Counted from the stretch's first letter, positions 3,556 through 31,789 are shown. The stretch: 64,000 nucleotides of DNA from Takakia lepidozioides (GCA_030704615.1 CM060731.1:72726001-72790000), one strand, 5' to 3'. Numbers and translations are program-made. Notes: generated from the sequence alone by a model not told the origin.

Positions 3556-4300
3556 CTTGGTCTCCCACCTTAAACTGTCATCCCAGCATCCACCAGCAAA
3601 AACAATGAGTGAAAATACCATGCACGCTAGACTACGGAGGTCCAAGCATTATAGTACTTAAGTACCGGGAGGGGGGCTGCAACTATTAATAGGGATGGAT
3701 GGAGGGAGGGGAGGGAGGAACGGTAGGTAGGAAGGTCTATAGCCAATAAGTTGCAGCAAACAACATACATAGTCACACACACACATTTCAATTTCGTTCT
3801 TTCTACCTATCTACCCAAAAGGCTATGCCAAACACAAGGTCTTATGAGTACTTTCTGTACCTACCCTTGGCAATAAACTGAAGTAAATCCCTCACAATGG
3901 TCTCCCACTGGATGCGGAGTCTATGACCACAAGGATACAACAAATGTGAAGGACGGTAGTCTACACTCCAGTGGCCACATAAACAAAATTGGAAAAGAAG
4001 GTCATGGACTTACACCAAGCTGACTTTCAGGCGGCTGCGAGAACTGCTTGAGAGGGCTACTTTCCAGCTCCTCTGCTGACTTGTTGACAACATGGAGCCG
4101 CTTCATCATAGGTCCCTATATCACAAACCATTACAATTTCTTCAGTGGCATTACAACCTGAAATACACTAGTTACATAGCTCACTCAAGAGAAACCCACT
4201 GCTCATGCAATTCACAAGCAACCCAAGAATTCCAAATGTGGACTAGACTTACATTACATTGTTGTACCTTCTGACGATTACACTGAGCAAAATTATAGGG

Positions 4301-5245
4301 CTATTGTCCAAAGAGAGGCTCAGACTTCAGAAACTGTGGAATACTAGGAATCTTGCTTGCCCTCTCCAAGAACGGCCACAACACATCGAGTAGATAGCCA
4401 TCTTTTGGCCCTGATGATCGCATTTTCCATGGCTCCGGATATATCCCACTAAATGGAGGATTGTTTGATGCCTTTCTTGGTGTGTCATCAACAAGAAGAG
4501 TGTCTTCAGGACCCCATTTTGGCCACTCTTCCCACACTCTTGATAGGTTCTTCAAATATATGGGCTTTGCATCAGCCCCCCTAGCCAATGGGTCAGTAAG
4601 CTCTTCATAGTATAGGGCATCCCACTGGAAAATAAGATTAGTGTGCCCTTTGAAAATAAAGTCCACCATCGGAATGAAGTTGCGAGCTTTGCAGCAAGAC
4701 CACACTGCCACCTCAAAGTGTGCAAAACACTTTTGCAAAAAAGAAATACAGCTGGGTCTCAAAACTACCATTTTCATCCCACACAACTTCCCCACAAATC
4801 CTTTGGGAACAGTTGTTGGACCACTAGTATCAAAAAGATTGGCGGAGCGGTTTGAGACCGTAACTGGCGATCAATCTCAACTCTCCCCTAACCCTATCAC
4901 CAATGATGATTTGCATCTGTCCAAGCAGTTCGCCATAGGGAAGGTAGGCACTGAGACAACAATTTCAAGTCAGTCTGCCTCTGGTACAAAGGAAGCTACT
5001 GATCATGATGCCCGTGATATGTCTGAGAAGCCTGGTACACCGGATTCAGGTATGCATGATTCCTTGGGGAATTCACATGGGGAGGATGGGACAGATGCTA
5101 CGGCATTCAATTGGTTGTGCATCCCACTGGGGCTGATATGTTTCAGCCAGGTGAGCGTTTACAGTCTCCCCCACCTCGCAAGCACTTGCTAGTTTTGGAT
5201 GTGAATGGATTGCTCTGTGAATCCACCAGAACCATTCATGCCAAA
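4301..5245. pseudogene. FCP1/NIF-like HAD phosphatase domain split across both strands by an internal inversion
   Basis: The minus ORF 4301-4795 has LRPSCISFLQKCFAHFEVAVWS...YLKNLSRVW...TLLVDDTPRKASNNP. The motif-I part RKHLLVLDVNGLL is on the plus strand at ~5177-5245. Confidence 0.8.
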
Positions 5246-8200
5246 TGTCACTGGACCTGCCAGGGGGACATTAACCCCCAATTTGAGCATCATTGCCTTA
5301 TGAGAGTCCATCATGTTCTGCATCCATGATTTCATCTCTAGCATATCAGACCCTTGAGCCTCGACTTGTTTTTCCATTGCATCCACATTTCCGACTATGG
5401 CAGAATACGCTACACTCGCTTCCTACCATATAGACAGAAATGCATAAGACAACATGTTCCAGCAAGTTTTTTTCCACCTGCCAATATTTGAGCACAACAT
5501 CAAGCACCTTACCTATCAATCCATATTGGGTGATCATACCAACCAGACACATATTCATCAAACACTGGCAACCATGACTACAACATGTTCACCTGTACAA
5601 AAATACTGGTCCCACTTTTGTTCTAGCAAAGCAGTAAATTCAGGCATAGGTCCTTCTACCACACATGCAGTCCTAGGGATACAATGATCACACGCAGCAA
5701 CTTCTGAAGTAAAATGTGTTAACCCTCTACTAAACCCCTTGATGGACTTAGACCTGGCCAGACAGGGCCGTCCTAGGGATACAATGTTGGCTTATAGTGA
5801 AAATCAACAAACCCAAACCCAACAGATCTCAGTCCAAACCAAGAAGTGGTTAGAGGTACCAAACTCAGTTTTGTCAATCAACACACTGGCACTCTTATAA
5901 GTACATATATTCTTTCAACACTTAAATCATTCACTCATAACTTGAGCAACCAGACGTGCTATAATACACAAGGCACACATGTACTGAAAGCACATGGTTG
6001 TTGAGTCTCACTTACCCGCCTATCACTCCCAGCTGACTTCCTTGAGACAGAGTATTCTTGTATGTCAGCCAACGTAGGGGGGCACCTGGTTTCTCTTTCC
6101 TACATATGAACCCAACATAACAAACAATATGAAGCCAATGTGCAATTTGTACTCAATGGCTCAACCATACAAAACCATAACAAAACCACTGAAGATAATG
6201 CAACGTCAAGATTGAACAATCATGTCAGCACAGAAATGATTTTATACTAAAGCTCAGCTCCAAAATTGCTTGAAATACTGAACCATAAGCCAACCAGCAT
6301 TAAAGATTGGCATTCATAGAATGTATTGAGAGGAGTACAGTGAGAAAGCTCATGAGGGTTCTTACTAAGCATGCCTCCATGCTGTCCTTCCCTCCCCGGC
6401 CCGTTTTGGTGTGATGCAGGCATTTGCCGTCTTCAAGTGAGTCTGCACTTTGGAGTACTGTTCTGTACTCCAATAGGAGGTGAGGCTCTTCCAATGCTCA
6501 TCAGACACGTCCATGGGTTCCCCCCCACCTTTCTGCCATTCCTTGTGCAAGTCATGTCGTCGGGACTTGATCATAATTGTGCCTATTGTGTTTCGCAACG
6601 CAATATCATCCAAGTCACGTTGGACATATTCAAATAGCTTGGCCAGGATTTCCTTGAGCTCTTCAATGATCTCATCAGGCTGATAGTTGATGGCTATAGA
6701 AGGATCACAGATACGATGAACGTGACCTTTGAGGGCCGCATGCCAAACATTCCTCGTTTGACCAACTGGTTTTCCTGCCTTGTTCACAACAACTACAGTT
6801 GCAGGAAGACCTTATGCCTCTATTTCTTCCTTCACTTTATATGCCACGGCCTTCACAGCATAATTTGCTCGTCTCAAGGCATTGGTTCCGTCAGCCTTTG
6901 ATTGAACCACATCCCCTGCAGGTTGAACCATTGGCACCTGTGCGGGAACGTTGAAGGGTTGATTCGGCTAGCTACCCATCGGTGGCCATGGTGGTTGGGA
7001 ACCACTCGAGGATCCATAGTGGTCATATGGGACCTGTGCATACGGCGGAGGATATTCAGGTGGCCTGCCACCTCCATAAGGAGGAGGAGGTGGGCGATAT
7101 GGAGGAGGAGCATAAGGGCCATAATGGCCGGCTGCATAATTGTGTTGGGGGGCCGTTGCGTACTGACCCTCCACATTGCCAGTGGGTGGATGCTGGTTGG
7201 GAGCCGGGTACTGAGGCATAGAGTGATATTGAGAGCCTGGTACTGGTGGCTGAGTATGGAAAACCTGGGGGGACTGAGGGCCGACTCCTGTGGCATTTTT
7301 CTGCTTTTCTGCTTCTGTTTTTGTTTGCCCTGGGTTTCCATACATGAAACACAATGCCAAGTAAATCCAACTACAAGGACCACACCATATCATGACATAA
7401 AGGTGTCATAAAGTATAAACAGTACGCATGATTTGTACAGGTCTGATTACCCAGAAATCAGACAGATCTTGGCTAGAAAATCGGCCAAATTGGATTGGCT
7501 TCAATGATGTGTGCCCAAGACTTTTCCGACCCCTTTTATGTATGGGTTTTGCCTGAAATCCATACCAAACATGCAGTAGGGAGGGGCATACCTGAAAGCT
7601 GTGAGAAAAGATGGAATGTGCTCAACATACGAGACCTACTGCTTACAAAGTTGTAAATAGTGCTATGGAATATGGGGGCCACATGCACATGGGCAATGTG
7701 CAGCTCCTCCACTCAGAAAATGGACAGACAGAAATGCACAAGCTGAATCTAGACAGAGAATGTGTTTATGACAGCACACCCCCTTCGAAACCAAACATGC
7801 AAATGAGGGACAGACCTACAAAGCACGGAAGAGACAGAACAGAAAGAAGAAGAATATTGACACGCAATTAAATCTGCCAAGTATTTAGACAATCCCTCCC
7901 CGGATCATGGCCCCTAATGAAGTCCGCATGATACTATTCGGCACTCATGAGGTTGTGCTCACCTTCGGAATAAGTGGTGAGAGACTACAAATATGCCCAT
8001 AAAATGCACTCACAGATAGAGACGGTGTGCCTGCACCACGTTTTTTCCCTGCGTGCACCACTGTGTCTGCATCTGCGTCCTCCGACATGGAGTCGGCTGA
8101 ATCCCCAATCCCTTCCTATACTGCTCCCTTTTGTGGTGGGGGGTAAGGATTGTCGTCGTCTATGTCAAAAATTACTTTGGGCTTGGCAGTTGTTCGAGTC

Positions 8201-8761
8201 ATGGTGACGAGTTGGGCACTTCGTCTTGCCGGACCTTTGATAGGAGCTCCACAAGATCGTGCCTTCCGACGCGGTTTCACACCCGTAATCCCGCAAAAAT
8301 ACTTCCATTGCGGCCCACAGGTTACTTGACTATCTCCCCTCTTAAACGACTAACACAAGACAAATGCAGCTCATACCCTAATGTTCATAAAGGGAAAATG
8401 ATGAAGTGCCTTACCGCTGTCCCAATGGCTGCCCGTCAAATGCGGTTCACTCCCGCCTACTGCTATGAATGCACTCCTATACCCTAAACTACACTCAACT
8501 TGCACTTTTCAAGCCTTTTCTACATTCACACCAACAACGCCGCCTCTCGATCACACCTCATCTACTGTGCAAATGGGAAGAGATCACACTGTTAGCTACC
8601 ATGCATGCATTGTCAAAGGATTGGGTCACTGAACTGTTCGATCCTTACCTTTCGAAGTCCTGCTTCAACTTTGCCGTGGCATCCTTCACGATGGCAATGT
8701 TAGCCTCACGTAGCTTCTCGTACTCAGTGAGAGGAGCAATGACAACCTTGGACTTCACCAT
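5246..8761 (-). mobile_element. CACTA TnpA-like multi-exon gene (Ptta/En/Spm transposase_24-like domain), degenerate
   Basis: ORF 6365-6787 has PMDVSDEHWKSLTSYWSTEQYSK..LKTANA (Ptta-like). There is a Pro/Tyr-rich exon at 6968-7393, a coiled-coil exon at 5246-5386, and a probable first exon MVKSKVVIAPLTEYEKLREANI at 8761-8650 ending in a gtaagg donor. Exon linkage is inferred. Confidence 0.65.
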
Positions 8762-8872
8762 GAATGATCATGCAGCTCACTAGCACACACCGCAAGAGGT
8801 AGATATATTGTAGAGAGAGCACTGAGGACACAAAGTTGCAGAGGCTCTACATGGCATTGCATACTACGAGCT

Positions 8873-11800
8873 ATGAACGTTCAACGTCTGTTCGGCCGTC
8901 ATGGTGCATATGAGCCACGCATGCGATTACGAGATGACAAACTATGGCGACTCGAGGAGGCGTACGCCATATCAAATGGGAACAAGAAAATGCTTTGCAA
9001 TTGCACTGAATGTCATGGATCCAAATGGCAGTTGTTGGAGACAATGAAGAAGCACTACCTCAAACATAAGAGGGATCCAACTTTGCGCAGCTGTACTATT
9101 CCGGTACATCCACATGAAGTACACTGTCCTTCAGGACTTAGCAATCTCCAAGTTTGAATTTGAAACCATTTTGGTGTGGTAGTAGTAGCCATGACTTCAC
9201 CACTCCACATGTCGAAAGTTGATTGGCGAGTTGTAGTCATGTAGTTGTGTCTATGACTGCCCTTTATACACATGTCGATATGTCGTTGGCTAGTTGTAGT
9301 CGTGTAGTCATAAACACATATAGGAACATGACTACGTCACTAGAACTATCTGCCATGTGTCACAATGTCGTTGCTCAAATCGAAGTGATGTAGTGATAGC
9401 CGTGACTACATTTGTCCACATGTCATAATCTACATATATTGTGAATGAACCGTGGGAAACACGGGATGCAGAGACATGCTGATTCTGATGACGAGGAGGA
9501 TCGGGCTGAGTTTGGGCAGGGGCCTAATGAAAGGGAGAACAATACGGATCATGAAGGTGGCGTGGAGGCAGAAATTCAACGAGCATTGCAGGAAGCTTTT
9601 GAGTTTGCGGATGCAAACAGGGAAGATCCGATTAATGGTGGAACTCGGGCCGAAGACAGCCCCAACGAAGAAGAATCCATGGACAATGCAAAGAATGCAG
9701 AGAATGGCCCAAACCTGAGTCAGGAGTTGACCCCAACTACGATACGCTATTTCGACAATCTCAGTGTAAACTCTACGAAGGGAGCTCGATCAGCCGATTT
9801 GAAGCTACTTTGCACTTGCTCAACTTGTGCACCACCCACAAGTGCACCAATGGCTTTGTGGATAAGCTTCTTGGATTGTTGCACAAAAGTTTTTTGCCGA
9901 AACAGAATTCTCTGCCGAAAACTAATTATGAAGCTAGAACTATGATTGCGAAGATGGGATTGCAGTACACCCAGATCCATGCCTGTGAGAAAGGCTGTGT
10001 ACTCTTCCGTGGGGAGAATGAAAAAGCAGAATTTTGCCCGGAGTGCAAGACATCGCGTTACATTCTTGGTCGTGGGACTGTACCCAGAAAAACACATTTC
10101 CCTGTCATCCCAAGGTTGAAACGCATGTATCGATGCAAATCAATCGCGCACCTTATGACATGGCACTTTAGACATAAGAGTCAGGATGGATTGGTTCGAC
10201 ATCCAGCTGATATCAAAGCCTGGGCCCACGTTGACTCCACATTTGCGGATTTTGCTTCAGAACCACGAAATGTACGATTTGGATTAGCCTTAGATGGAGT
10301 AAATCCATACAATGCTCAATCCACGAGTTGGAGCACATGGCCCATCCTGTTGGTCAACTATAATTTGCCTCCATGGTTGATGACAAAGAAGTTTTTTGTC
10401 ATGTTAGCACTCCTTATCCCTGGAAAGGAGTCTGTTACATCTGCGAACATTGATGTGTATTTGATGCCCCTAGTAGAGGAGCTACAGGAATTGTGGAGAG
10501 GCATCATAGCAATTACGATGTTTCCCAAGCTCTCCAACAACGCCAATTCTTGCTACGGGCATTACTGCTATGGTCAATCCATGAACACCCTGCATATGGC
10601 TTGCTCGTGGGTCAGGTTACTAAAGGTTATGCTGGTTGTCCAGCCTGTGGACCCGAGGTGGATTCACAGCATTTACATGCATGTTCGAAGACTGTGTTCC
10701 TGGGCCATCAGAGATTTCTTGCCCACAACCATCCGTATAGAAGATCAAGATTGTTCAATGGTGCTGTTGAGCATAGAGTGGCTCCACAAACGCAAACGGG
10801 AACACAAATAAAGAAATGTGCAATTGACCTGATTGCATGGATAGCGGCAGGGGGGAAACTAGATACGCCATCAGACCCTTCCAAATCTCACGGAGTGAAG
10901 CGATTATCAATTTTATATGCCTTGCCTTACTGGGAGGGCCTCCTCATACGACATACGTTTGATGCTATGCATTGCGAGAAGAACTTTGTAGAGAATATCA
11001 TTAAGACTATTTTTGGGGAGAAAGATACATTGAGGGTTCGGCGTGATCTTGAATTACTTGGGCTGCGTCCATCATTGTGGTTGCAACAACATCCAGATAG
11101 GGCAGATACGTTAATCATGCCTCCTGCTCCTTATGTTCTGACTGAAGCTGAGTTGAAAGTTTTCTTGGACACTGTGCGAAACCTTAAAGTACCCACAGGA
11201 TACGCATCAGCTTTCAAAAAACACGTGATAAAGAAAAAACTATCTGGCATGAAATCACATGATTACCATGTGTTCATGCACCAAATTTTACCGCTGGCTA
11301 TTTGTGGGCTCATGGCAACAGGTGTGCGCACTACAATTTTGCGAGTATGTCGTGTATTTAGGAGGTTGTGTGCAAAAGTAGTGAATCCTGCAGAGTTTGA
11401 GGAGTTGAAACATGAAGCAGTTGTTACACTCTGTCTAATGGAGAAAGAGTTCCCACCATCATTCTTTGATGTGATGACACATTTGCTTGTCCACCTAGTG
11501 GACGAGCTCGATTTATGTGGTCCTGTGGCATCACGTTGGATGTACCCCATGGAGCGGGCAATGAAAGAAATGAAGGGGTATGTCCGGAACATGGCAAAAC
11601 CCGAGGGCAGCATGGCTCAAGGATACATTTTTTATGAAGCTCTAGGATTTTGCACGGAGTATATGGCAGGATATGATGGAACCGCACGAAGGGTGTGGGA
11701 TGCAGATGAGGAAGAATCTGTGGCCGGTGTAGTTTTGGAAGGAGCCGGCAAACCTCGGAAATTGGGTGACTTGCATGCTATTGTACACGATTACATCATT

Positions 11801-12672
11801 CAAAATCATCCAAGCATATCCGATATGTTGAAGTAAGTCCACACCCTTTCAGATCTGAATATTTTGTTGATTTGATCTTTTTGTACTGCCCCATGCTTAG
11901 TCTGTGTTGGCTAAATAGCCTCGACATTTTGTGCCAGGAAATATGAAGAGGAGTCCACACAAATGGATGCTTGTCCTCTATTTGCTGCTTGGCTGCCAAA
12001 TGTATATGGGAACATCTATCTGGAATTCAAGAACATGTGCTTGAAGATGGCGTACGACAAGAATTACTGGATCTTTCAAGACCCCCATCATATTATGCCT
12101 TGACATACAAGAGTATGTCAGGATATGGCAACCATTACAGGGCTACATCCCCAGGCATGAACACATCGAGTATGGCATCCTTTGATTGTGGAGTCTCATC
12201 AATTTTCAAGCATGAGACGGAATCTGTACGGTATGTGGGTCTTATCAGGGAGATTTTGCAGATCGACTATGGCACTACACGGCCTGTAGTGTTTTTGTGC
12301 TCCTGGGTACGGGCCCAAAATGTGGGTCGTCAACCCAGATCAATGAAGGAAGATGATTGTGGCTTCACGTTGGTCAATTTCAATCAAATGCTACCACCCT
12401 CTGAACAGCCTTTTGTATTGCCAGTATAGGTTGATCAAGTCTTTTTCTCTGAGTGTGTGAAGGAATGACAATGGAAAGTTGTATTGGAGAAGAGCCCCCG
12501 ATCACGGAGAGTGGTGTGTGATATCTCAATTTCTATTGATGATCTGAGAAGAGTTGAAGGCTTGTTAGCTCCACAACAACTACAAGAGACATTGACTACT
12601 GGCCGAACTCACAACCGAATTCAGACAGTGACACCAGAGCAGCTAGCCTCATTGTACCGACCCCCATACTGA
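8873..12672 (+). mobile_element. CACTA TnpD/Tnp2-like transposase gene with introns, frameshifted
   Basis: Transposase-associated Zn motif (CNCTEC..KKHYL) at 8873-9100. Transposase_21 motifs IHACEKGCVLF, RHPADIKAW, EPRNVRFGLALDGVNP, YNLPPW. DUF4218-like DAMHCEKN, KSHDYH, FPPSFFDVMTHLLVHL, WMYPMER. DUF4216-like YVGLIREI..QPFVLP. Frameshifts at ~9780 and ~10500; stops near 12430. Confidence 0.92.
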
Positions 12673-13049
12673 CGACGCAAGGTACAACCCCCTGTTGTCC
12701 AGCAGGTCTGTCATAAAGACACAGATACCTCCACCGACGTTGAGGCTATGGTCAGTGATGATGACACAGATACCTCCATATTCACAGACACGGATTCAGT
12801 CGATGGCAATTAGATATGCTACCCTTGTGCATGTATTACATGTCATTCCAAATAAATGTACTCTTCTGTCCCCATGTAGTCACATTTTTTTGGGTACCAA
12901 CTGTCAATGAATATTGATATTCAAATATGCTCACAATTCCTCCATGCTATAAGCTGTTGTGATCAAGCACTAGTGGATTGGCCACTAGTAGGGCCATTTA
13001 TTCATATCCAGATTGTAAAACATTGGCACCCAGAAGTTGGGAAGTGACC

Positions 13050-19500: not shown

Positions 19501-22500
19501 TTTGACATGCGATGTCTCCGTTCCTCTGCAGAATGATATCTGAAAGTCAGAATGAAATTCAAGGACTTTAATCAAAGAACCACAGAACTACAAGTGGAAC
19601 ATGTAGAATGAGAAACCAACCTGTTCACATCATTCATTGCCGTCAGAAGACCCATCATGTTCCCCTCACAATCCAGCACCATCGATCGAACAGAGTAATG
19701 CCACTCTTCCTCCTGTGAGTGCAGCCTCCCAATAACAGCCATCCATGCAAGCAATCGGTGGTTCCCATCCCAAACGTGAAACATCTTCCCCGAGAATGCC
19801 TGGGTGGAAGGTTTCTTGGAGAGAAGAAGTTCGAAGGATTCGTTCACCTGTCTCCAAATAGGATCCCAGGAGTCCACGATTGACTCATCCACAAGGAGCT
19901 CATTGCCTGTGGAATCCTTTGTACAAACGTAAAACACTGCGGATCCATCCAAATACCCATGAACAAACTCGGCCTCTAGCTTGAGAATGTCCTTGATGAG
20001 GGGTGGTCGAACGACGGGCATGGAAACCATCCTACACAGAGGAATCTTCAACCTCCCACCCGGGGCAAGCTTACTTTGCACCACAAGCTGAGAGTTTACC
20101 TTCTGACCCCCCAGCATCTCAGCGGCTTTGCTTTCATAGAATTCATCGTCAACATCAACAATGATATCCTTCCCCAGCCCCGAAGGGATCTCCTCCGCCA
20201 CACTTTGCATCTTCTCCTGCAGGGTTGTCCATTCAAATTGATATAAGAGTGAGGCATGAGACGATGGTGTTTGAGCATGGCAAACAGGCCATGTGTCGAA
20301 GAAAAGATGAGCTCAAACAGTGTGCGTTGACGCACACTGTTTGAGCTACAAGGTAAGTGTTCATTGAACCTCAATGAGAAGCCCTTAGTGGCCGATTTTC
20401 AGATGTAAAAAAAATAAAATGTGAGCTCAAACAGTGTGCGTTGACGCACACTGTTTGGGCTGCAAGGTAAGTGTTCAGTGAACCTCAGAGACATGCCACA
20501 TAAGTGTTCATTGAACCTCAGAGACATGCCAGGTAAGTGTTCATTGAACCTCAAAGAGAAGCCCTTAGTGGCCAATTTTCAAATGACAAAGGCAATGACA
20601 AGGTGAGCTCAAACAGTGTGCGTTGACGCACAGTGTTTGAGCTGCCAGGTAAGTGTTCATTGAACCTCAGAGACATGCCTTGTATTGCCGAATTTCACAG
20701 GGGAAAAACAGTGACAAGGTGTGCTCAAACATTGTGCGGCAACGCACACTGTTTGAGCTGCCAGGTAAGTGATGATTGATCCTCAAATACAAACCCTATG
20801 TGGCCGATTTTTGGATGACAAATGCAATGACATGGTGAGCTCAAACAGTGTGCGTTGACGCACACTGTTTGAGCTGCCACGTAAGTGATGATTGATCCTC
20901 AAATACAAACCCTATCTGGCCGATTTTCAGATGAAAATGCAATGACATGGTGAGCTCAAACAGTGTGCGTTGACGCACACTGTTTGATCTGCCAGGTAAG
21001 TGTTCATTGATCCTCAAATACAAACCCTATGTGGCCGATTTTCAGATGACAAATGCAATGATATGGTGAGCTCAAATAGTGTGCGTTGACGCACACTGTT
21101 TGAGCTGCCAGGTAAGTGTTCATTGAACCTCAGAGACATGCCTTGTATTGCCAAATTTCACAGGGGAAAAACAGTGATATGGTGAGCTCAAACAGTGTGC
21201 GTTGACGCACACTATTTGAGCTGCCAGGTAAGTGATGATTGATCCTCAAATACAAACCCTATGTGGCCCATTTTCAGATGACAAATGCAATGATATGGTG
21301 AGCTCAAACAGTGTGCGTTGACGCACACTGTTTGAGCTGCCAGGTAACTGTTCATTGAACCTCCGAGACATGCCTTGTATTGCCGAATTTCACAAAGGGG
21401 AAACAGTGACAAGGTGTGCTAAAACAGTGTGCGGCAACGCACACTGTTTGAGCTGCCAGGTAAGTGATGATTGATCCTCAAATACAAACCCTATGTGGCC
21501 GATTTTCAGATGACAAATGCAATGATATGGTGAACTCAAACAGTGTGTGTTGACGCACACTGTTTGAGCTGCCAGGTAAGTGTTCATTGAACCTCAGAGA
21601 CATGCCTTGTATTGCCGAATTTCACAGGGGAAAAACAGTGACAAGGTGTGCTCAAACAGTGTGCGGCAACGCACACTGTTTGAGCTGCCAGGTAAGTGAT
21701 GATTGATCCTCAAATACAAACCCTATGTGGCTGAATTCAGATGACAAATGCAATGATATGGTGAGCTCAAACAGTGTGCGTTGACGCACACTGTTTGAGC
21801 TGCCAGGTAACTGTTCATTGAACCTCCGAGACATGCCTTGTATTGCCGAATTTCACAGGGGAAAAACAGTGACAAGGTGTTCTCAAACAGTGTGCGGCAA
21901 CGCACACTGTTTGAGCTGCTAGGTAAGTGATGATTGATCCTCAAATACAAACCCTATGTGGCCGATTTTCAGATGACAAATGCAATGACATGGTGAGCTC
22001 AAACAGTGTGCGTTGACGCACACTGTTTGAGCTGCCATGTAAGTGATGATTGATCCTCAAATACATGCCGTTTGTGGCTGTTTTTCAGATGAAAAAACAA
22101 TGACAAGGTGGGCTCAAACAGTGTGCGCCAACGCACACTGTTTGAGCTGCCAAATAGTGGAGAATTGAACCGGGCATATTGGCCCTATCTGGCCGTTTTT
22201 CACACCATCAACCAAGTAAAATGCGGGGCTCAAACAGTGTGCGTCAACGCACACTGTTTCAACATCCAATTCGTGGTGGATTTAACCTGTCGTAGTTCCC
22301 CAATTTGGCCGTTTCAGACATCAACAAGCCAGCAAAATGGAAGGCTCAAACAGTGTGCGTCAACGCACACTGTTTGAGCTTCTTGTTCGCGGTTGATGCA
22401 ACCTGGCAGAGATGTCGTGTGTAGACTATGTTCATATCGAAATAGAATCTCAACTTGGGTTCACATCTACAATGAAGCACAAAGGTGGGTTTCAAAGATC

Positions 22501-22815
22501 GAACCTTTTTTTTTGCTGCTCCAGAAGACTCCCCAATCGCCGGGGACCCTTTGCGCTTCGGACTGCTCTCCACGCCTCTCATGTTCTGGAGCATCTCCCC
22601 CATCCTCTCTTCCACTATTAGGTTCTTTGTGAGGCCAGTGTCAACATCATCTTCGGCGTCTGCCTCTCCCTCGGATGCAGTGTCCTCCTCATCTGTTTTT
22701 GGAACTATGGCAGGCTGCTGTTCTTCCCCGGATTCCTGCTCTTCCATCGCCGAACTTTGCTCTTTGCCCTCTTCTTCCGCCTTTTCCTCTTCGGCCACTC
22801 TTTCCATCCTCATTC
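16541..22815 (-). pseudogene. 9-exon gene for a ParB/Srx-like domain fused to a beta-class N4C/N6A DNA methyltransferase (~1050 aa); this copy is disrupted
   Basis: GT-AG exons: ~22815-22505, 20216-19621, 19525-19333, 19220-18780, 18660-18437, 18288-17637, 17551-17213, 17087-16899, 16782-16541. Motifs: KMFHVWDGNHRLLAW (ParB GxxRxxA); ELIILDIPDGL (motif IV-like); LSDAGVLVLI; spliced IVECCTYTDARVLDLSMGT|GASYHACKASA*HLFGIEGDAEIY (motifs X, I, II). Stops at 19372, 18544 and 16748; one frameshift in exon 8. The start is uncertain (possibly up to ~22960). Confidence 0.8.
20310..22380. repeat. Tandem array of 18 near-perfect 38-bp palindromes (AGCTCAAACAGTGTGCGT-TG-ACGCACACTGTTTGAGCT), ~116-bp period
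   Basis: Copies start at about 20310, 20424, 20606, 20722, 20838, 20953, 21069, 21185, 21301, 21417, 21533, 21649, 21764, 21880, 21996, 22111, 22227 and 22343. The ~78-bp spacers fall into two related types. Confidence 0.97.
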
Positions 22816-23959
22816 TATATCTGGCTCTATTCTTGTTTCTAGAGCTCGTGAAGTATAATGACTTCCTTCTCTTCCTCCTCCGCTGGAAACAAGGGCTCCC
22901 CACGATGCCTCTAGAGCTCTCCAGTTTGACGTTTGCAACAAGGGTTGCTATTGCATGTAACCAAAATCAAAATTGGACATTGTCAACCGTATTTGGATGC
23001 GGGTGTTGTTATTGTGTGCGAACGGAATTTATCCATTTCGGCGTCTTTGTATTATTCAAGAAATAAAATGCTAGAAAATATGACATACGTTGCATGTACT
23101 TGTGATATATGTCAGATGTACTTCGCCGCCTGCCAATAGATGGGCATTAGAGAGGTGAGTTCAAACAGTCGTGCAATCAGTTTTCAGCCCACTGAGCTAG
23201 TAAGGAAGTGCCCAGTATACGACTTATGTGTCACACATTAGTGGAAAAATAAACCAACACCAACTTTCACATCCCTCATCCCATTAGAGCTTTGCCAACT
23301 TCACTGCCTCTTTGGAATGCCCCCCCCCCCGTGAAAAAGCAAGTATAAAGCAAATTCCCAGAGACATGTTTACCAGTGATATATGTCTCGCTGGTAGTCG
23401 TTGAGAAACAAGGCTCTTAAGCTTTGCCCACGAACTCAACATCAAATATGAGTGTTGAATTGGGAGGTATGACACACAACCCTGCAATCCAGCAACTTCT
23501 CACGGTTTAGAAAAGACCTTTCAAAAATGAAGAGAAGGAAGAGATTGAAAGGGAACTACGTGGTTCAGGGCTGGATTAAATGGGGCAGCTTGGCATCAGA
23601 TGGGCCTTGGGTTGCTGCCTACAGCAAAATAGAGAATATGGCATGCTACTGGAGGCATATCAATTGCATATCAAATCCTCCTTGTCCACAACTGACAGAC
23701 CTCTAGAGCTGGCACCAGCAACAATCCATATTTTTTATCTAGGCCATCACCATTGCCAAAGTAAATTTGCCCCTACCTCTCTTGACATAAGATGCCTCTA
23801 TTCTCACTGTGGAATTAGAACGGGAGAACCATGCACTGGTATGAACAGACTCTTACATGGCAGAAACCCTCGACAAACGGGGAGAGAGGAGAAGAGAATG
23901 GAGGTACCGCCGCCCTCGGCAATTGGTGGTTTTTTGGGGAAATAACATAGTGAATGCCT

Positions 23960-24225
23960 ATAATTACTTGTAGGGCCTCCCTCCTATGACAACCATGCTG
24001 GGCATATCCTGCGATCATTGCATTCCAAGACACCACATCTTGTTCGGCCATATCATCGAACACTCCCTTGTCATCCTTGATGCTACCACATTCAAAATAC
24101 ATGTCCACCCAGGTAGAGTTTAGAACAAATACCTCTCGTACTATTCCCATTTTGAGGCTGTCCAATTTCAAGTTCGCACATTCATTGCAAACGCAACCAA
24201 TTGTGACCTTGTCCGGCTTCAGCAT
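23960..24225 (-). pseudogene. PPR remnant, truncated at 24225
   Basis: LKPDKVTIGCVCNECA...WVDMYFECGSIKDDKGVFDDMAEQDVVSWNAMIAGYAQHG. Confidence 0.85.
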
Positions 24226-24562
24226 CACTAAAAGAACTCGTTGTATAGTCGAATACCAATGTCATGAAGGGGGGAATGTATCAAATTGTACACTTGAAGA
24301 CTGCAAACAGGGACAACGATTACAAGTCAATTCAAAGTCTGCAAACTGCATGACTCAATTAAGTATGCTATTTACTACTTCGTGATATTTGCCCACGCCA
24401 CTACATAGTGAAACTGCAAACTGCTTCGAGCTCCAGGTCCAATATTTTGCCAATATCAAATGGATACATGTTCACATATAACAAGTGCTTCATTAAAGAT
24501 AGATGGATGAGGTCATCCAATGGATGAACCCATTCATGTATATGCCTTAAGATGCCACGTGT

Positions 24563-25288
24563 TGTCGCGCACCTCACTTCGGTAAGCTCCCCCCTCAAGT
24601 CATAGATACTCGCTTGATGCGCGCGCCTAGCTCCCAACATGGCCGCCAGGCCAACTTGGAACTCCGGCTGCTCACCGGGGCATAACGGTCCCCCCTTTGA
24701 TCTCCCAAAGAACCCTCCAACGATTTGGAACCAGTGGAATTCCCTTTGGTAGTTGGCAGTCCGGAACAGCTCCCCACTCTTTGGTCGCTTTCCGGCTCGC
24801 TCGCTTACTAATTAGTTTTTGGTCACCAACGGGCTTGCACCGTTCTCGGGGTTACTACTCCATATATATACTTTTGTAGCTGTCCGCGGGGGTTTCACAA
24901 ACAACCATGCCATTTTATGGCGAACCACCACGAACACCCTCGACTCCCGGTGATGAGTCGCGGTGAGTCTTGGCCCACCCACCACGGCCCCTATGGACCG
25001 TGATGAGTCCCAAGACTCCCCACGACTCCCACCACGAGGTCTCCGCCCCAGGGTGAGTCCTATGCCAGCCCCACTAAGTCTCGCTAAGCTACCACCACCC
25101 CTTGTGGAGCCACCCCCACTGCAACCCGGTGTGCGGGGCTCCACCTAGTGAGCGCCTCCGCCTCCTTGAGTGCTTTGGGCACTCAAGGGTGCTTCAGCCC
25201 CCCTACCTATCGCTGCCACTGCCCCCACCACAGGGGCAGCCCCTCTTGTGTCCCGACCCCCCTGCCCTCAAGGCAAAGGGCCGCGACA
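24563..25288 (-). repeat. 3' LTR (726 bp)
   Basis: Direct repeat of 30733-31439; TG...CA termini. Confidence 0.96.
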
Positions 25289-26194
25289 CACACCCCTACC
25301 AACAGGGAGTCGATGTCCTCATCGGCTTGTCCATTTTGTGGAAACAAACATCCAAGTTGTGGCGTCCCACATCAAGGAGTTTGTTTCCGTACCATGGCGT
25401 CCCATGGCAAAGAACCAAACCCCACACTTGACTCTACTCTCCACTAGCTAGTTCGGCCGACTTCCTCCAAGTCTCGGCCAAGGGTGGAGCCTCTCAAGCT
25501 CCTCCCGGTGCACTCTTCTTGGCCTACTTCAAGGCCAAGGAATGATCCTCCCCGAGGATCGAATCACCTTACTGCAACAACATTGCTTGCGACCGCTCAT
25601 GATGCCGCTTTTGGCATCACCTTGAGCAAGGGTTCACCTCGAACCCTCTTTGACTAGGAAGATAACCTTGAACCAACCGCGCGCCCCAATCACTACAATT
25701 GGGTCCGCCTTGGAATGTTGGCCTGAGGTACGGAAACACGCCGAAGCCGCACTACGACTTCGTCCCGAGGCTACACGATTATAATACGTGAACGGAAGCA
25801 CGTAGCTTCCGCGTTAGCCCGCACTACAAAGCAACCCCCTCGGTAGCGCAGTTATAGTATGCGCACGCGCCAGGTGCGCACTAGCACGTGAACTCCTAAG
25901 GAATGCGCAAGTTTTCTTGCCCCTTGGATGGGAGTCACCCGATTTCGATACTGCGCAAACACACGATTAACCCAATTTACCTCTCCCACTTTTGTAAGCT
26001 AGCATGCATTCTACACACTAGCCAACCACACCATGCATCACCTTTCCAAACAAAATAGGACGCACAACATTTGGAACCCATTTCCTTTATAACAAATTTT
26101 TGTACAGTACAAGTTTTTGCAATCGGATTCCTAAGCTAGCTAAGCCGGGCTAAGCATGCATTTCCTCCCCCACGCTCCAAGGTTGATGTCCCCA

Positions 26195-29100
26195 TCAACG
26201 CTTCTTCCGCTTTTGAGGTCGCCCTTCGAAAACTGCAACCGCCTTGGATGCGTTTCCCATTTCTGAGGCACGCACCCAAGATGCCTCCACATGATGATAG
26301 CCCTTCCATTTGACGAGATACTCCGTTTCTCGGTTCTTGAACCTCCTCGACTTAAGTACTGCCTCCACCTCATACTCAGGTTCATTTTCATGATCCAACA
26401 GCACAGGTGGCGGACGCAACACTTGATGCCGATTCGGACGCGCTTCATCTTTGAAGTAAGGCTTCAAAAGGGAGACGTGGAATACTGGATGCACCTTGCT
26501 GTTTGCCGGCAGCTCCAATTCATACACATCCTCATTCATAACCTTCCAGATGCGAAAGGGTCCCGCATATGGAGGTACGAACTTTGGACTCACTTCCGGA
26601 GGTAGTCGGAAATTCTTGATGTTCAACCAGACCTCCGTGCCTGCCTCAAACTTCACTTCCCTCCGCTTCCGATTCGCCTGTCTTTCATACCGTTTCCTAG
26701 CTTTGGCAATGTTGTACTTTGCGAGCTTCAACAAACGCTCGCGTTCTTCCAGTACCGCCGCTACTGTCAGTTCCTCAACGTCCTAGGCGGCCCAACTTGT
26801 CGGCACCAGAGGTGCTTTTCCATAGACCAATACGAAAGGGGAAACTCCTGTTGCGGAGTGTTCTGTGTTATTATAACAGAACTCTACCGCGTCTAAGTGT
26901 TCCACCCAGTCTGTTTGGTCTGCCGACACGTAATTCCGCAAGATCTGCTTCACTACAGAATTCACTCTTTCCATTTGACCGTCGGTCGTAGGTCGGAAGG
27001 CGGTGCTCATCTTCAGCCTCGTCCCCATTTTCTTCCAAAGTGCCCTCCAAAATTTACTCGTAAACTTTGGATCGCGGTCCGAGACAATATCCTTCGGGAC
27101 TCCATGATGCTTTAAGACGTGGGCGAAGTAAAGTCGCCCTGTTTCTTGCGCCGTTGCCGTCTCCTTGGTGGGGATGAAATGGCCCATTTTACTGAACCTA
27201 TCCACCACCACCATGATTGCATCGAATCTTTTTGACAGCGGCATAGCAGTCATGAAATCCATCGAGACGCTTTCCCAAGTCCCCTCTGGAATTGGCAAGG
27301 GTTGTAACAGCCCCGCTTGCTTTTTGTACTCGCTCCGGTTTTGTTGGCATGTGGAGCATGTCTTGACATACTCCTCTGCCTCCTCCCTCAGTTTGGGCCA
27401 GAAATACTCTTTCTTCAAGAGTGCCGCAGTGCGCTTGGCTCCGCCGTGGCCCGCAAGCGGGCTATCATGGCATTCTCTCAAGAGGCTATCTCTGATCCAT
27501 CCCTTCGGCATGTAGAGACGCTTTTGCTTATACCGGAGCAGTCCATTTTGCAAGTGGAACTGCAATTTAATCCCCATCCTCAAGTCCTGCATCACGGACT
27601 TCTCCAGATCATCCTTCCGGCAAGCCTTCCGGATCTTCCTTTGGAGCGCCGTCTTGCCCCTATACACCAACATGAGCTGCTGCTTTCTACTTAAAGCATC
27701 GGCCACCACGTTGTCCTGTCCCGGTTTGTACTGGATATCCACGTTGAACACCGCCAAAGTATCTTGCCACCTAAGTTGTTTTGGGGACAACTTGGGCTGC
27801 GTGGCAAAATACTTCACCGTGACATTGTCCGTGAACACCTTCACTGGGTTGGAACCAACATAGTGGCGCCACAGCTCAAGACAGTGCACCACCGCCTTCA
27901 TCTCTTTCTCGTGCGTCGGCCACCGTCGCTCCACTTCATTCAGTTTCTTACTTTCGTAAGCCACTGGACATCCATCTTGCATCAGTACACCCCCAATCGC
28001 GAAGTCCAACGCATCTGTATGAATCTCGAACGGACGATCGAACTCCAGGATTTTCAAGACTGAAGCTTCCGCCATCCGCTGCTTCAATTCAGCAAAAGCT
28101 TGGCCACAAAAGGTGTTCCATGCCCGACTTTGGATTTACACAGAAGGTCTGACAGCAGCCTCGCGATCTTGGCGAAATTTCTCACATACTTCCGGTAATA
28201 GGAGGCGAGTCCTAGGAATGATCGCACTCCCGGGACCGAAGTCGGAGGCTCCCAGTCCAAGATTGCCCTCACCTTCCTGTCATCCATTTTGATCCCATCC
28301 TGTGTAATCACATGCCCCATGAACTCCACTTTTGTGACCCCGAATTCGCACTTTGAAGCTTTGGCATACAGCTTCCGTTCCCGCAATTTCTGGAACACCC
28401 TTTTGAGGTGCTCCAGGTGCTCCTCCTTTGTTTTCGAATACACCAAGATGTCGTCGATGTACACGATCACAAAGTCATCCAACCACTCCTGGAAAAGGTT
28501 GTTCATCAGCGTGCTAAAGGTCGTGGGAGCGTTGGTGAGTCCAAAAGACATCACCAAGAACTCATATGAACCATACCTTGTCCTGCACGCGGTCTTCTCC
28601 TCATCTCCTTCCGCCAGTCGAATTTGATGATAGCCGGAGCGCAGATCGATCCGGCTGAAATACTTTGCTCCTGCCAACCGATCGAAAAGGTCGTCAATCC
28701 TTGGCAAAGGGTACCGGTTTTTTATAGTCACCTTATTCAAAGCCCTGTAATCGACACACATCCGCAGCGTCCCATCCTTCTTGTCTGCGAATAGCACCGG
28801 GGCTCCGTAAGGTGACTTACTCGGCCGGATGTACCTCTTTGACATTAGATCTTTGAGCTGAGTCTTCAGCTCGACCAACTCTCTGTGGCTCAACCGGTAG
28901 GGCGCCTTGGCAGGCGGTTCCGATCCCGGTATCACCTCAATCTTGTGGTCAACTCCTCTTCGCGGTGGCAAGCCGCTTGGTAAATCCTCCGGCATCACAT
29001 CCTGGTATTTCTCCAAAATCCCCTTGATCCAATCTGGGCTCGGCTCCCCATCGCCTTCTCCCTTCACTTCTCTAATGTGGAGCAAAAATTGGGGCTCATG

Positions 29101-29370
29101 TGCCTCCTCCACGGCCCACTCCCTTGCTGACAGAAGGTTTATTCGCCCTCCCACGGGTTTGGGCGTTTCCGACACTCGTAAGACCTCGCCACCATTCCCA
29201 CATGGCAGCGTGACTACTCTCTTGCGGCCATCTATGACCGCTCCGGATTTGCTCAAAAAGGTCATCCCCAAAATGAGATCTACTCCATCGATCTCGCAGA
29301 TGGTGAAATTCTCACGTCCCTCCCAACTCCCCAGTTGAAGAGGAACATCAAACGCCAACCTTGTCGCCAA
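26195..29370 (-). pseudogene. Gypsy pol: protease end, RT, RNase H, integrase and chromodomain; one frameshift (~28100) and one stop (26783)
   Basis: [33 protein letters not shown], integrase HH-CC, SMDFMT, VSDRDPKF, GPFRI, VHPVFHVSLLK, and chromodomain EYEVEAVL..EYLVKWKGY..ASWV. Confidence 0.95.
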
Positions 29371-30731
29371 TTGCGGTTCTCCTTTGGCTGCGACGCTCTT
29401 GTGTCCACCAACAACGACACGTTAGTTCCGGATATTATCCCATCCACGAACAATAATTGACTCCCTTTACGTAAGGCGCCAGTTTCCTGATACAACTCAC
29501 AAGAGAATTTGCCTACCTTGCAAGTCCTGGCGACCACCGCTTCCACCAAGCGACTGATGGTATCTTCCGACAGCTCTGTGGTCACCCGAGTCATGTTCAA
29601 TTGCCGGGGCTTCGTGCACTTCTTGGCCATGTGCCCGGGCTCCCCGCAATTGAAACACACTCCATCAAAGGTCGCCTTCTGTCCGCCATAGGCCGCTCCA
29701 CCCGCTTTTCCTTTCGAAGCACCGGGTGCCGCCTTGACTTGTGAAGGCCCTCCCTTCGATTTCCACGTGCCATTGTCGCCGCGTGGCCTATCCCACTTCT
29801 TTTCCGGTCGGAAGGAGTCACCTTCCCGCCGGGTCTTCTTGTGGTTCAGCTCCGTACGGCCTTGTCTTTCACCCTTAGGGACATCTGAGAAACATTCAGC
29901 CCTCTCAATTGCCTCGTTCAAAGTCTTAGGTGACTTCTCCTCCAACTTCCGCCTGGCCCATGGGGCCAGTCCCGCCACAAAGTTGAAGACCATTTCTGGT
30001 TCTGCCATGTCCGCGACTTCGAGCAACAGCACATTGAAAGCCTGGACATATCCCCGAATGTCATCTGTTTGCTTCAAATTCCTCATCTTGTCCCGGGCGA
30101 GCCATGACGCGTTGAGGGGCACAAACTGCCTCTTCATCAATTCCTTGAACCCACTCCAGTTCAAGGTCTCCGGGCTTGGACCTCGGTCGTGAAGGCGTTT
30201 CTGCCACCATTGTTGAGCATAGCCCCTCAAATAGGTGGGAGCCACTTCCACCCGATCCTCGTCACTCAACTTGGCCGCCCGGAAGTACTGCTCTAGCTCC
30301 AAGAGCCAGGTGTTGAGTGCCTTCCGATTTCGGACACCCTCGAAGGTGCCGGGTTCCTTAGGCTTCACCTTAAACTTTGCCTTAGCGGAAGTGGCATTAG
30401 CCGCCTTCAACACGTCTTTCAACGTCCCGCCAAATTGCGCCAACAACCCTTCCCAGAAGGCTGCCGGCATGGGAGGCATCTGTTGGTCGGTCGGAGCTCT
30501 CAAGGATTCCTCAGGCTCCGACTCCTCAGATTCCTCCCGCTCTTGAGCGGCCTCGTTTTCGGAAACATGCATCGCTTCCTCAAATGGCCGCCTCGGTGAT
30601 ACGTCGCCCCCATTGGGCTCACCGGGATCATCATCTTTTGGGCCGTTCCGCTTTCGCTTTGGCTTGCTCGACCCCATGATGAGGCCAATCCCAAGGATGA
30701 TCGCGTACTGAACTCTAAGCTCTGATACCAA
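29280..30731 (-). CDS. Gypsy Gag with CCHC knuckle and start of protease (frameshift after LVDTRAS)
   Basis: [12 protein letters not shown], retrotrans_gag-like core, [22 protein letters not shown]. Confidence 0.9.
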
Positions 30732-30732
30732 G

Positions 30733-31439
30733 TGTCGCGCACCTCACTTCGGTAAGCTCCCCCCTCAAGTCATAGATACTCGCTTGATGCGCGCGCCTAG
30801 CTCCCAACCTGGCCTCCGGGCCAACTTGGAACTCCGGCTGCTCACCGGGGCATAACGGTCCCCCCTTTGATCTCCCAAAGAACCCTCCAACGATTTGGAA
30901 CCAGTGGAATTCCCTTTGGTAGTTGGCAGTCCGGAACAGCTCCCCACTCTTTGGTCGCTTTCCGGCTCGCTCGCTTACTCACTAGTTTTTGGTCACCAAC
31001 GGGCTTGCACCGTTCTCGGGGTTACTACTCCATATATATACTTCTGTAGCTGTCCGCGGGGGTTTCACAAACAACCATGCCATTTTATGGCGAATCACCA
31101 CGAACACCCTCGACTCCCGGTGATGAGTCGCGGTGAGTCTTGGCCCACCCACCACGGCCCCTATGGACCGTGATGAGTCCCAAGACTCTCCACGACTCCC
31201 AGGGTGAGTCCTATGTCACCCCCACTAAGTCCCGCTAAGCTACCACCACCCCTTGTGGAGCCACCCCCACCGCAACCCGGTGTGCGGGGCTCCACCTAGT
31301 GAGCGCCTCCGCCTCCTTGAGTGCTTTGGGCACTCAAGGGTGCTTCAGCCCCCCTACCTATCGCTGCCACTGCCCCCACCACAGGGGCAGCCCCTCTTGT
31401 GTCCCGACCCCCCTGCCCTCAAGGCACAGGGCCGCGACA
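30733..31439 (-). repeat. 5' LTR (707 bp)
   Basis: Adjacent to the PBS; lacks a 19-nt segment (accacgaggtctccgcccc) present in the other LTR. Confidence 0.96.
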
Positions 31440-31789
31440 CGTGTAGTGATGTAATCATAGAAACAAAGATGTGAAACCTCTAGTAGTCATGTAGTCATAA
31501 GCTTATATGGCATGTCATCAATGTGTAGTAGTGGTGTAGTCATTTAGTCATAAGCTTACGTGGCACGTGTCTGACGTGTAGTATTGCGTATGACTACTAG
31601 TTATATAAACCAAGCCTATGTTCTTGGTCAACACTGTTTGACCGCGGCTCCTAGTCATGTAGTAAAACATATGACTACATTAGATTAAAATATATTAAAA
31701 TTCGCCCATCAATGGGTTTCATCACTTCGTACTCACACATATAAGGTTTAGATCACCCGTAGTCATAAAAACGTTAATCTGTAGTAGTG
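31440..31789 (-). mobile_element. CACTA end with intact TIR (CACTACTACAGATTAACG on the minus strand) and GTAGTCAT subterminal repeats; target of the Gypsy insertion
   Basis: The plus strand ends ...aaaacgttaatctgtagtagtg at 31789, with many gtagtcat/atgactac motifs. The flank reads ATA on the minus strand. Confidence 0.85.

Follow-up and report, generated by a model that had tools for sequence, protein, structure and literature searches.

A probable Mutator-type passenger, a ParB–methyltransferase gene, in a decayed CACTA element of Takakia lepidozioides

RESULTS

Two TSD-matched ends delimit a single CACTA insertion

The DNA analyzed here, called the window, is a stretch of 64,000 nucleotides from Takakia lepidozioides (GCA_030704615.1, CM060731.1:72726001–72790000), in which a CACTA element holds a TnpA-like gene, a TnpD gene and a gene with ParB and methyltransferase (MTase) domains, together with several inserts. 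The right end of the element (31445–31789, plus strand) is made up of subterminal repeats and a terminal inverted repeat (TIR, 31755–31789) followed by TAT. Its 18-nt terminus (31772–31789), already recognized in a first-pass annotation, is exact and unique, with 0.03 occurrences expected by chance. The same annotation placed the opposite boundary at 3556; this position is an inversion breakpoint in a PPR pseudogene, and the left end lies outside the 3556–31789 interval, where a TIR (2204–2238) and a GTAGTCAT-rich subterminal region are inverted in place (1560–2238, minus strand; inner limit approximate). The left TIR and its right counterpart agree at 30 of 35 positions, compared with 22 of 35 for the next best site, and the two ends are alike over the terminal ∼35 bp only, as expected of opposite ends. 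The left terminus is decayed and begins CCCTA; the right one begins CACTA exactly. After re-inversion, both ends are flanked by the 3-bp target-site duplication (TSD) TAT, found at 2239–2241 (minus-strand reading) and 31790–31792, for which a chance match would arise roughly once in 30–64 cases. GTAGTCAT occurs 18 times in the window (1.5 expected), with clusters at 1657–2215, 9233–9335 and 31483–31766, and subterminal repeats of this type are thus present near both ends. We also considered whether 2204–2238 is the right end of a second CACTA copy, which was ruled out because the subterminal sequence differs and the TSD matches.

The host sequence on either side is a PPR pseudogene. Its left part (2242–3556, plus strand) was inverted together with the left end and, once re-inverted, reads in the same direction as the right part (31793–33107, minus strand); continuity of the PPR E-domain across the insertion site is plausible by eye, without Pfam support. 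All of the genes noted earlier fall within a single CACTA insertion whose two ends share a TSD. No RNA family was found by Rfam in positions 1–34000.

The CACTA genes and the inserts that enlarge the element

A broken TnpA-like gene with a proline-rich part occupies 3900–8767 on the minus strand (lower limit approximate) and contains, on the same strand, a Transposase_24-like core (6363–7012) and a NIF/FCP1-like domain (4304–4816, E 1.5e-13). It has no Pfam match within the window; its assignment comes through L018, the single CACTA relative examined over its full length, whose gene has the same layout, resembles it (E 8e-4) and matches Transposase_24 weakly (E 0.012, below cut-off). A piece carrying NIF motif I (about 4870–5260, limits approximate) lies on the plus strand, opposite to the rest of the gene, as the result of an internal inversion. 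In it, the HAD/FCP1 motif DxDx(T/V) is missing and reads DVNG, a non-canonical form, with DLNG in L001 and NVYG in L018. Of the TnpA plus HAD-phosphatase gene proposed earlier, the NIF domain holds and the likeness to TnpA is seen through L018, but the DxDxT motif is absent and the piece that should carry it is inverted.

The TnpD transposase is a pseudogene with frameshifts and stops (8873–12810, plus strand), consisting of a Transpos_assoc-like exon (8873–9157) followed by Transposase_21, DUF4218 and DUF4216-like parts. Pfam matches above cut-off to Transposase_21 (PF02992, E 8e-41) and DUF4218 (PF13960, E 1.6e-36) confirm its identity. As had been reported, the subterminal-type motif recurs in intron 1, where the GTAGTCAT cluster at 9233–9335 lies between the first exon and an ORF at 9445. 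The TnpA-like, TnpD and ParB-MTase genes were described as similarly lightly decayed, which is upheld as a qualitative likeness because each has several stops or frameshifts. L018 is 11.2 kb long, has the TSD TTC and carries TnpA-NIF and TnpD head-to-head without a ParB-MTase gene; the head-to-head pair is the family plan of this CACTA. The CACTA termini, 3-bp TSD, subterminal repeats in both orientations, TnpD domains and TnpA-like gene are those of Spm (CACTA/EnSpm), from which the window and L018 differ in two respects: the TnpA-like gene faces TnpD in head-to-head orientation, and it includes a NIF/FCP1-like domain. We found no published description of this layout in the literature searched.

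The three genes do lie inward of the right TIR, but what lies directly inward is a young Ty3/gypsy chromodomain LTR retrotransposon that went unmentioned in the first-pass annotation. It is 6.9 kb long (24563–31439, minus strand), has the TSD CGTGT and is nested in the right subterminal region; its LTRs (24563–25288 and 30733–31439) show 13 differences in 707 aligned bases. A second, older gypsy remnant (13906–15577, minus strand) and three PPR fragments also sit between TnpD and the right end. The remnant has an integrase-end-like frame with a PHD finger (14841–15014, E 6e-12) and a 179-bp direct repeat pair (13906–14084 and 14412–14579). Two of the PPR fragments, at 13208–13370 and 23970–24230, are on the minus strand, flank the block and are of compatible phase, with no TSD seen; the third (15755–16068) is on the plus strand. 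The 'giant' size of the element is due to the 6.9-kb gypsy, the second gypsy remnant, the PPR scraps and the ParB-MTase gene.

A ParB-MTase pseudogene with a non-canonical motif IV

The ParB-MTase accessory pseudogene (16217–22903, minus strand) has about nine exons and is collinear with its homologues in L017 and Ceratodon. It comprises an acidic exon 1 (about 22490–22903), a ParB exon (19620–20210), helical middle exons, and MTase exons with motif IV, DIPDG (17210–17550), and motif I, DLSMGTG (16891–17073), all on the minus strand; in-frame stops are found near 18545, 16750 and 16542. Scans of the window's own ParB and MTase exons against Pfam, PHROGs, NCBIfam and PADLOC gave no match, PDB sequence searches returned nothing for ParB, and single-sequence structure prediction was uninformative (pLDDT 34). 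An AlphaFold model of the ParB exon reached a pLDDT of 86, and its top Foldseek ranks were Noc, ParB and Srx, with a probability of 1.0 but a weak E-value (9e-3) and a TM of about 0.3. Residues G149, N150, H151 and R152 are conserved in at least 90% of sequences, and the resulting GNHRxxA falls within the GxxRxxA motif type. A ParB/Srx fold in the window gene is supported by this model.

In the MTase part, motif IV precedes motif I, the order of the beta class, and both motifs align to 5HFJ. Profile matches were obtained to PF01555 (E 5e-5, below cut-off) and to PADLOC MTase_II (E 3e-5), and the window's MTase exon matched the family alignment A3, which itself includes that exon, with an hhalign probability of 98. 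The earlier reading of a ParB-MTase with an amino-methyltransferase fold is thus borne out by the structure match and the profiles. No prokaryote could be identified among the best 150 profile matches, which came from a library without organism labels; those of the long matches that were checked belonged to plants or had no label.

Across 108 homologues, motif IV reads D-h-P-[ED]-[GN], with Asp in 91 and Pro in 86, and none has the aromatic Y/F/W at the stacking position. The motif I Asp is present in 49 of 49, and Ala mostly replaces the first Gly of FxGxG. The family therefore departs from the catalytic motif (D/N/S)PP(Y/F/W) of active N6A/N4C methyltransferases. Since the catalytic aromatic is missing family-wide, methyl writing by ParB-MTase, and with it the proposed self-marking through amino-methyltransferase activity, appears doubtful from the sequences.

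Linkage to Mutator-type transposases in other carriers

We compared nine independent ParB-MTase loci, all outside the source genome. In seven of them (L001/L024, L002, L003-6, L012, L013, L017 and Ceratodon L025), the gene is head-to-head with a Mutator-type transposase, and TnpD was found within 10 kb of ParB-MTase at none of the nine. P0107 and P0228, whose contigs are of equal length, showed no linkage within 10 kb. The transposase matches SWIM above cut-off in L017 and has a D..D..CxxH conserved by eye, with no MULE match in Pfam or PDB. L001 and L024 are 96–98% identical over 13 kb, have different flanks and possess 55-bp TIRs and 10-bp TSDs (or 9-bp TSDs, should the terminal A be part of the element), showing that this carrier family has been recently mobile. 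The Mutator-type linkage and these mobile copies rule out a single-copy host gene; ParB-MTase is a transposon accessory gene with multiple carrier loci. It had been attributed to a toolkit of the CACTA family, which the data do not support: its partner at seven of the nine loci is of Mutator type, linkage to CACTA was never seen in the nine loci outside the source genome, L018 lacks the gene, and the palindrome core described below is absent from the rest of the CACTA element. Around the window module, we found neither a remnant of a Mutator transposase nor, beyond chance matches, a pair of TIRs or a TSD.

CpG-containing palindromes accompany the gene

The array that had been noted beside the gene lies within it, in intron 1 (20301–22454). 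Its unit is 116 bp, with a 232-bp higher order, and it contains 18 copies of a 38-bp palindrome with the core TGCGT-NN-ACGCA. In the window this core is confined to the array and occurs nowhere else in the CACTA element, including the CACTA ends and the TnpA/TnpD promoter. The array shows no sign of protection, since its CpG observed/expected ratio (0.53) does not differ from that of the window (0.55).

CpG-containing palindromes are found near or inside the ParB-MTase gene in every carrier. At eight loci the core is TCGG-NN-CCGA, with 1–22 copies compared with 0.03–0.15 expected. The window-type core occurs at 12 sites in L017, the closest relative (0.23 expected), and at 20 sites in Ceratodon, where a 138-bp array upstream of the ParB exon accounts for 9; L001 and L024 also have one palindrome site near each element end. 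Neither core is present in the CACTA relative L018. Co-evolution of the palindrome core with the ParB clade looked good at two versus eight loci and was lost on adding Ceratodon; it is not shown, because Ceratodon falls apart from the window and L017 in the ParB tree.

DISCUSSION

On balance, we favor the view that the window holds a decayed CACTA element with a Mutator-type ParB-MTase passenger, likely a VANC-like self-regulator in its native elements. A CACTA element of the plan left TIR, TnpA-NIF (minus), TnpD (plus), right TIR would have entered a PPR pseudogene cluster of a seed-free plant, and its left end would later have been inverted along with its flank. The foreign block between TnpD and the right end, with PPR scraps, a gypsy remnant and ParB-MTase with its intronic palindrome array, would include an accessory gene of Mutator-type elements that lost its transposase and TIRs. 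This passenger may represent a single capture or a nested remnant, now broken like the rest of the element; capture by CACTA is favored because an equally old nested insertion would be expected to leave behind a Mutator transposase remnant, TIRs or a TSD.

Several other histories and functions have to be weighed. It is rather unlikely that this CACTA family took over the cassette from Mutator-type elements and then multiplied with it as working cargo. The gene does sit inside TSD-matched ends without a trace of Mutator TIRs or transposase, its decay is comparable to that of the CACTA genes, and in red algae such cassettes pass among elements of Plavaka (EnSpm/CACTA superfamily), Mutator and Zisupton type (10.1101/2025.02.11.637652). 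However, the palindromes are lacking near the CACTA ends and the TnpA/TnpD promoter, neither the nine outside loci nor L018 link the gene to this family, and host PPR scraps border the block. It is improbable that the pieces are independent of one another and came to lie between the CACTA ends through inversions in the PPR pseudogene cluster or through misassembly: at least two inversions are visible (the left end and the NIF piece) and internal PPR fragments lie on both strands, but breakpoint reuse beside the right end would be required, and that end retains its own flank and TSD.

As to function, we give limited credence to the possibility that the protein works as an amino-methyltransferase, its active site being unusual, and places 4mC or 6mA marks on the element that carries it. 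The strongly conserved Asp and Pro of motif IV and Asp of motif I, the beta-class order as in M1.HpyAVI-type structures and the 4mC writers known in Marchantia and bdelloids would fit, but not the lack of Y/F/W in all 108 homologues or the Ala at the first Gly of FxGxG. We consider it unlikely that the palindromes are bound by the Mutator-type transposase, through its cysteine-rich N-terminal domain, or by host bZIP/WRKY factors, with ParB-MTase doing something else. The palindrome core includes TGACG and TTGAC and does not follow the ParB tree, L001 and L024 have single sites near both ends, and transposases are intrinsic sequence-specific regulators (10.64898/2026.08.24.746577). Against this, most sites are in ParB-MTase introns, far from the ends, the array remains attached to the gene even after the transposase has gone, and in red algae ParB genes adjoin inverted-repeat arrays with an unrelated transposase (10.1101/2025.02.11.637652).

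A self-binding system acting on its own repeats, as suggested in the first-pass annotation, remains the best functional reading, and the palindromes, enriched in every carrier, are probably the predicted binding sites of ParB-MTase itself. As a VANC-like, sequence-specific self-regulator, the native protein would bind the CpG-containing palindromes that lie in the introns of its gene and close to the ends of the element. Its ParB/Srx domain, with the motif GNHRxxA, would bind a nucleotide and might act as a clamp or spread. The MTase fold, which keeps the SAM-site aspartate without the catalytic aromatic, would more probably read bases or shield them from host 5mC than write 4mC or 6mA, and the divergent transposase promoter would thereby stay usable. 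On our estimate, the MTase domain is somewhat more probably non-catalytic than not; altered catalysis is conceivable but less probable, and another role is considerably less so. A bolder proposal, which we regard as very unlikely, is a portable parS/ParB-like module of land-plant transposons, in which a nucleotide-gated clamp and a repurposed MTase act at intronic palindromes by non-canonical marking or shielding, the window recording a functional transfer from Mutator-type elements to CACTA.

The system had been taken as undescribed; like cassettes are, however, published for algae (PMC12477816; bioRxiv 10.1101/2025.02.11.637652). In Ectocarpus, Sola1-1_Ec32 has an accessory gene of ∼1100 aa with ParB-like and N4C/N6A MTase domains, for which binding and modification of its own element were proposed; by its published description it shares with the present family the two domains in one gene, the strand opposite to the transposase and a large DNA transposon as carrier (PMC12477816). 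It differs in being a Sola-1 element of a brown alga with no array described, compared with Mutator-type carriers (here CACTA) of land plants. The Ectocarpus study cites green-algal precedents (Iyer 2011). The giant red-algal Plavaka elements of the EnSpm/CACTA superfamily, with the accessory genes PAG2 and PAG3, carry a superfamily-hopping cassette with, by published description, a ParB-domain gene beside tandem inverted-repeat arrays and an N6_N4 MTase domain (bioRxiv 10.1101/2025.02.11.637652; Curr Biol 2025); the best PDB family, 7BNR ParB, is common to both systems. There, the two domains belong to separate genes, in which ParB is joined with a 2OG oxygenase and the MTase with SET, whereas here ParB and MTase form one gene without SET or 2OG, the array lies in an intron and motif IV departs from the canonical form. 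VANDAL elements resemble the present carriers in their Mutator type, their accessory gene and their family-specific motifs amplified as intronic tandem repeats, the targets of VANC (PMC5735166). VANC, however, has DUF1985/DUF287 and non-palindromic 9-mers, and its function is experimentally shown, whereas here it is predicted. Prokaryotic beta-class N6/N4 MTases and ParB/Noc share the motif IV-before-I order and the ParB/Srx fold with GxxRxxA, but their DPPY/SPPY is replaced here by D-h-P-[ED]; the same comparison of motif order and ParB fold, and the same difference, apply to the MTases of phage ParB–terminase loci (PMC4738411). Marchantia DN4MT1 differs in having TSPPY, with no ParB mentioned.

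We conclude that the cassette is a land-plant variant of the published algal type and that the window copy is a dead passenger, a fossil that is of value because it may record how the cassette passed from one superfamily to another. In the literature consulted, the only transposon anti-silencing proteins with a shown function are VANC and the TnpA/transposases of flowering plants; for the algal ParB-MTase cassette, a role has been proposed only. With the catalytic aromatic lost throughout the family, caution is due, as 'self-methylation' may not be the right model. The cassette is now known from land plants, among them the culturable moss Ceratodon purpureus, which has a chromosome-level genome, and from Mutator-type families that have moved recently; its presence in them, with candidate target palindromes, makes the self-binding idea directly testable. 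The Ceratodon gene corresponds to KAG0624017.1 plus its ParB exon.

CACTA ends and family plan

The 18-nt right CACTA terminus at 31772-31789 is exact and occurs once in the window, which bears out the intact TIR that the first-pass annotation, made from the sequence alone, had placed there. The same annotation had the element begin at 3556. At 2204-2238 lies a decayed terminus that agrees with the right end in 30 of 35 positions (22 of 35 for the runner-up site), with only the terminal bases in common and a different subterminal sequence. TAT precedes this terminus on the minus strand, the same triplet follows the right end, and the PPR pseudogenes flanking both ends read in the same direction after the left segment is re-inverted. 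We conclude from the match, the triplet and the direction of the flanks that 2204-2238 is the left CACTA end, inverted together with its flank, and that 3556 is an inversion breakpoint. A second breakpoint may lie within 1-1050 or to the left of the window; a further gypsy integrase fragment is present in 1-1050, adjoining the inverted end. The subterminal motif GTAGTCAT is ∼12-fold enriched in the window and forms three clusters, one of which is in the first TnpD intron, confirming its reported recurrence there. Two similar 19-nt words resembling a CACTAGT-type terminus (plus-strand positions 14385-14403 and 23234-23252, E 1.5) are probably due to chance.

The ParB-MTase gene with its array, TnpD and a TnpA-like gene with a NIF domain are present where annotated, and all genes of the element are broken. 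Both TnpD and the NIF domain score above the Pfam cut-off. In the window (3900-12810) and in a CACTA relative retrieved via TnpD (outside locus L018, 1258-12491, TTC duplication), TnpD stands head-to-head with a TnpA-like gene that either includes a NIF/FCP1-like domain or precedes one. The L018 element, in the order left TIR, TnpA-like plus NIF (minus strand), TnpD (plus strand) and right TIR, lacks ParB-MTase; the head-to-head TnpA-NIF/TnpD arrangement, ∼11 kb, is therefore the family plan. This layout is kept between distant seed-free plants, and no description of such a CACTA family was found in the literature searched. The HAD-phosphatase domain proposed beside TnpA is upheld as a domain, but its motif I is non-canonical (DVNG in the window, on a piece inverted in this copy; DLNG at the ParB-MTase locus L001; NVYG in L018), so that phosphatase activity is doubtful on sequence grounds.

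Two additions account for the greater size of the window copy: a block of ∼11 kb that separates TnpD from the right end, and a 6.9-kb gypsy insertion. The latter (24563-31439) is a young chromodomain element with TSD CGTGT, LTRs that differ at 13 positions, the left being 19 bp longer than the right, and a pol region spread over several frames. A second gypsy remnant within the element (13906-15577) has a PHD finger following its integrase end, together with a pair of 179-bp repeats that abound in CCACTAGT motifs and are spaced just ∼330 bp apart. Both gypsy sequences, as well as three PPR fragments within the element, had been overlooked. The PPR fragments in the window are of the PLS type, and its host genes are intron-rich; with the nearest named relatives (below), these traits point to a seed-free plant as the source.

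The ParB-MTase gene and its carriers

Gene models in the window were searched exon by exon, and the full-length architecture of the ParB-MTase gene (16217-22903, minus strand) was deduced from collinearity with homologues. A large profile search was added because the word search is blind to full-length fusions and no family scored above the profile cut-off for the MTase part. By word search, the 212-aa ParB exon has 115 relatives, with a GNHR motif conserved to at least 90%. An AlphaFold model built with their alignment (pLDDT 86) had Noc, ParB and sulfiredoxin as its top-ranking Foldseek matches (E 9e-3, probability 1.0). Towards the C terminus the protein has a beta-type amino-MTase fold. 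Motif IV reads D-h-P-[ED]-[GN] in the 108 homologues covering it, with Y, F and W absent from the stacking position throughout; the motif I aspartate is invariant and the first motif I glycine is mostly alanine. Judged by these residues, the MTase fold is under constraint, but canonical amino-methylation is doubtful. The window gene and its closest relative, at outside locus L017 (63% in ParB), are collinear up to the contig limit of the latter, exon 1 included, which places the window array (20301-22454) in intron 1. The nearest named relatives are from Ceratodon and Riccia; a distant ParB-exon homologue is found in the liverwort Riccia sorocarpa (P0112, KAL3693787.1).

Nine independent outside ParB-MTase loci were compared. 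Within this sample, drawn from outside the window's genome, and contrary to the proposed linkage with CACTA genes, TnpD adjoins the gene at none of them, and at seven (L001/L024, L002, L003-6, L012, L013, L017 and Ceratodon L025) ParB-MTase stands head-to-head with a Mutator-type transposase of ∼1250 aa that combines D..D..CxxH motifs with a SWIM finger. The upstream sequence of L014 is just 4 kb, and no such transposase is present within 10 kb at L015. L001 and L024 are 96–98% identical across 13 kb, lie at different sites and have 55-bp TIRs and 10-bp TSDs, and thus represent a recently mobile Mutator-type element. The window holds no trace of the Mutator-type transposase, its TIRs or TSD. 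The transposase, with a core 55–57% conserved among L001, L024 and L017, gave zero MULE profile matches and may belong to a Mutator-like lineage not described before, marked by a cysteine-rich N-terminal domain. Directly outside the L001 element (1-3006), a degenerate MTase-like motif I is followed on one strand by a NIF domain; this gene region is possibly a second accessory cassette.

Palindromes and the role of the module

Palindromes with CpG sites lie within the ParB-MTase gene or upstream of it in all carriers. The window array repeats every 116 bp and contains a 38-bp palindrome 18 times; the core of this palindrome, TGCGT-NN-ACGCA, occurs at 12 sites in L017 (0.23 expected) and 20 in Ceratodon, nine of them within a 138-bp array that lies upstream of the ParB exon. 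TCGG-NN-CCGA is found in eight loci at 1–22 copies versus 0.03–0.15 expected, partly in 117-, 74- or 85-bp arrays; at L014 (1-14794), 85-bp arrays in both orientations fill the introns and upstream region, with 22 sites. Both motifs are absent from the L018 CACTA element. Co-evolution of core and ParB gains no support from the ParB tree, in which the window gene and L017 are joined (99/97) and Ceratodon falls outside that group.

In its native elements, ParB-MTase is most likely a sequence-specific self-regulator, to judge from this anatomy and by analogy with VANC, whose targets form tandem repeats in introns (PMC5735166). The protein, a candidate binder of its own intronic palindromes, would when bound protect the divergent transposase promoter from host silencing, acting less as a writer than as a reader or shield. 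Alternatively, the palindromes may serve as sites for the transposase or for host factors (10.64898/2026.08.24.746577). In L001/L024, individual sites are also present close to each end of the element.

For the window itself, we lean towards the module being a dead passenger in one CACTA copy. That it is working CACTA cargo seems rather unlikely: the core is confined to the array, with none near the CACTA ends or promoter, so that nothing indicates that the CACTA element took over the palindrome system. ParB and MTase genes do adjoin inverted-repeat arrays in Plavaka elements of red algae (EnSpm/CACTA superfamily), and that cassette passes between superfamilies (10.1101/2025.02.11.637652); Ectocarpus Sola1-1 has a 1104-aa ParB plus MTase gene on the opposite strand (PMC12477816). 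By description, the window type would work like these, and with such cassettes known the system can no longer be called undescribed, as had been suggested; for land plants no report was found in a literature search that left most subscription papers outside. That the parts are rearranged neighbours is less probable still.

Minus-strand host genes in 38600-50300 and 57606-58628 include an ARL8-like small GTPase, a PP2C-like phosphatase, one intron of which holds a PPR fragment (46033-46457), and a C2H2 zinc-finger gene of a single exon (Pfam zf-C2H2_6). A short dispersed repeat has two copies (38074-38171 and 51600-51698, 83%), and an AT-rich non-coding element at 33400-35350, with internal direct repeats and tandem repeats of 30–31 bp, resembles a further non-autonomous transposon.
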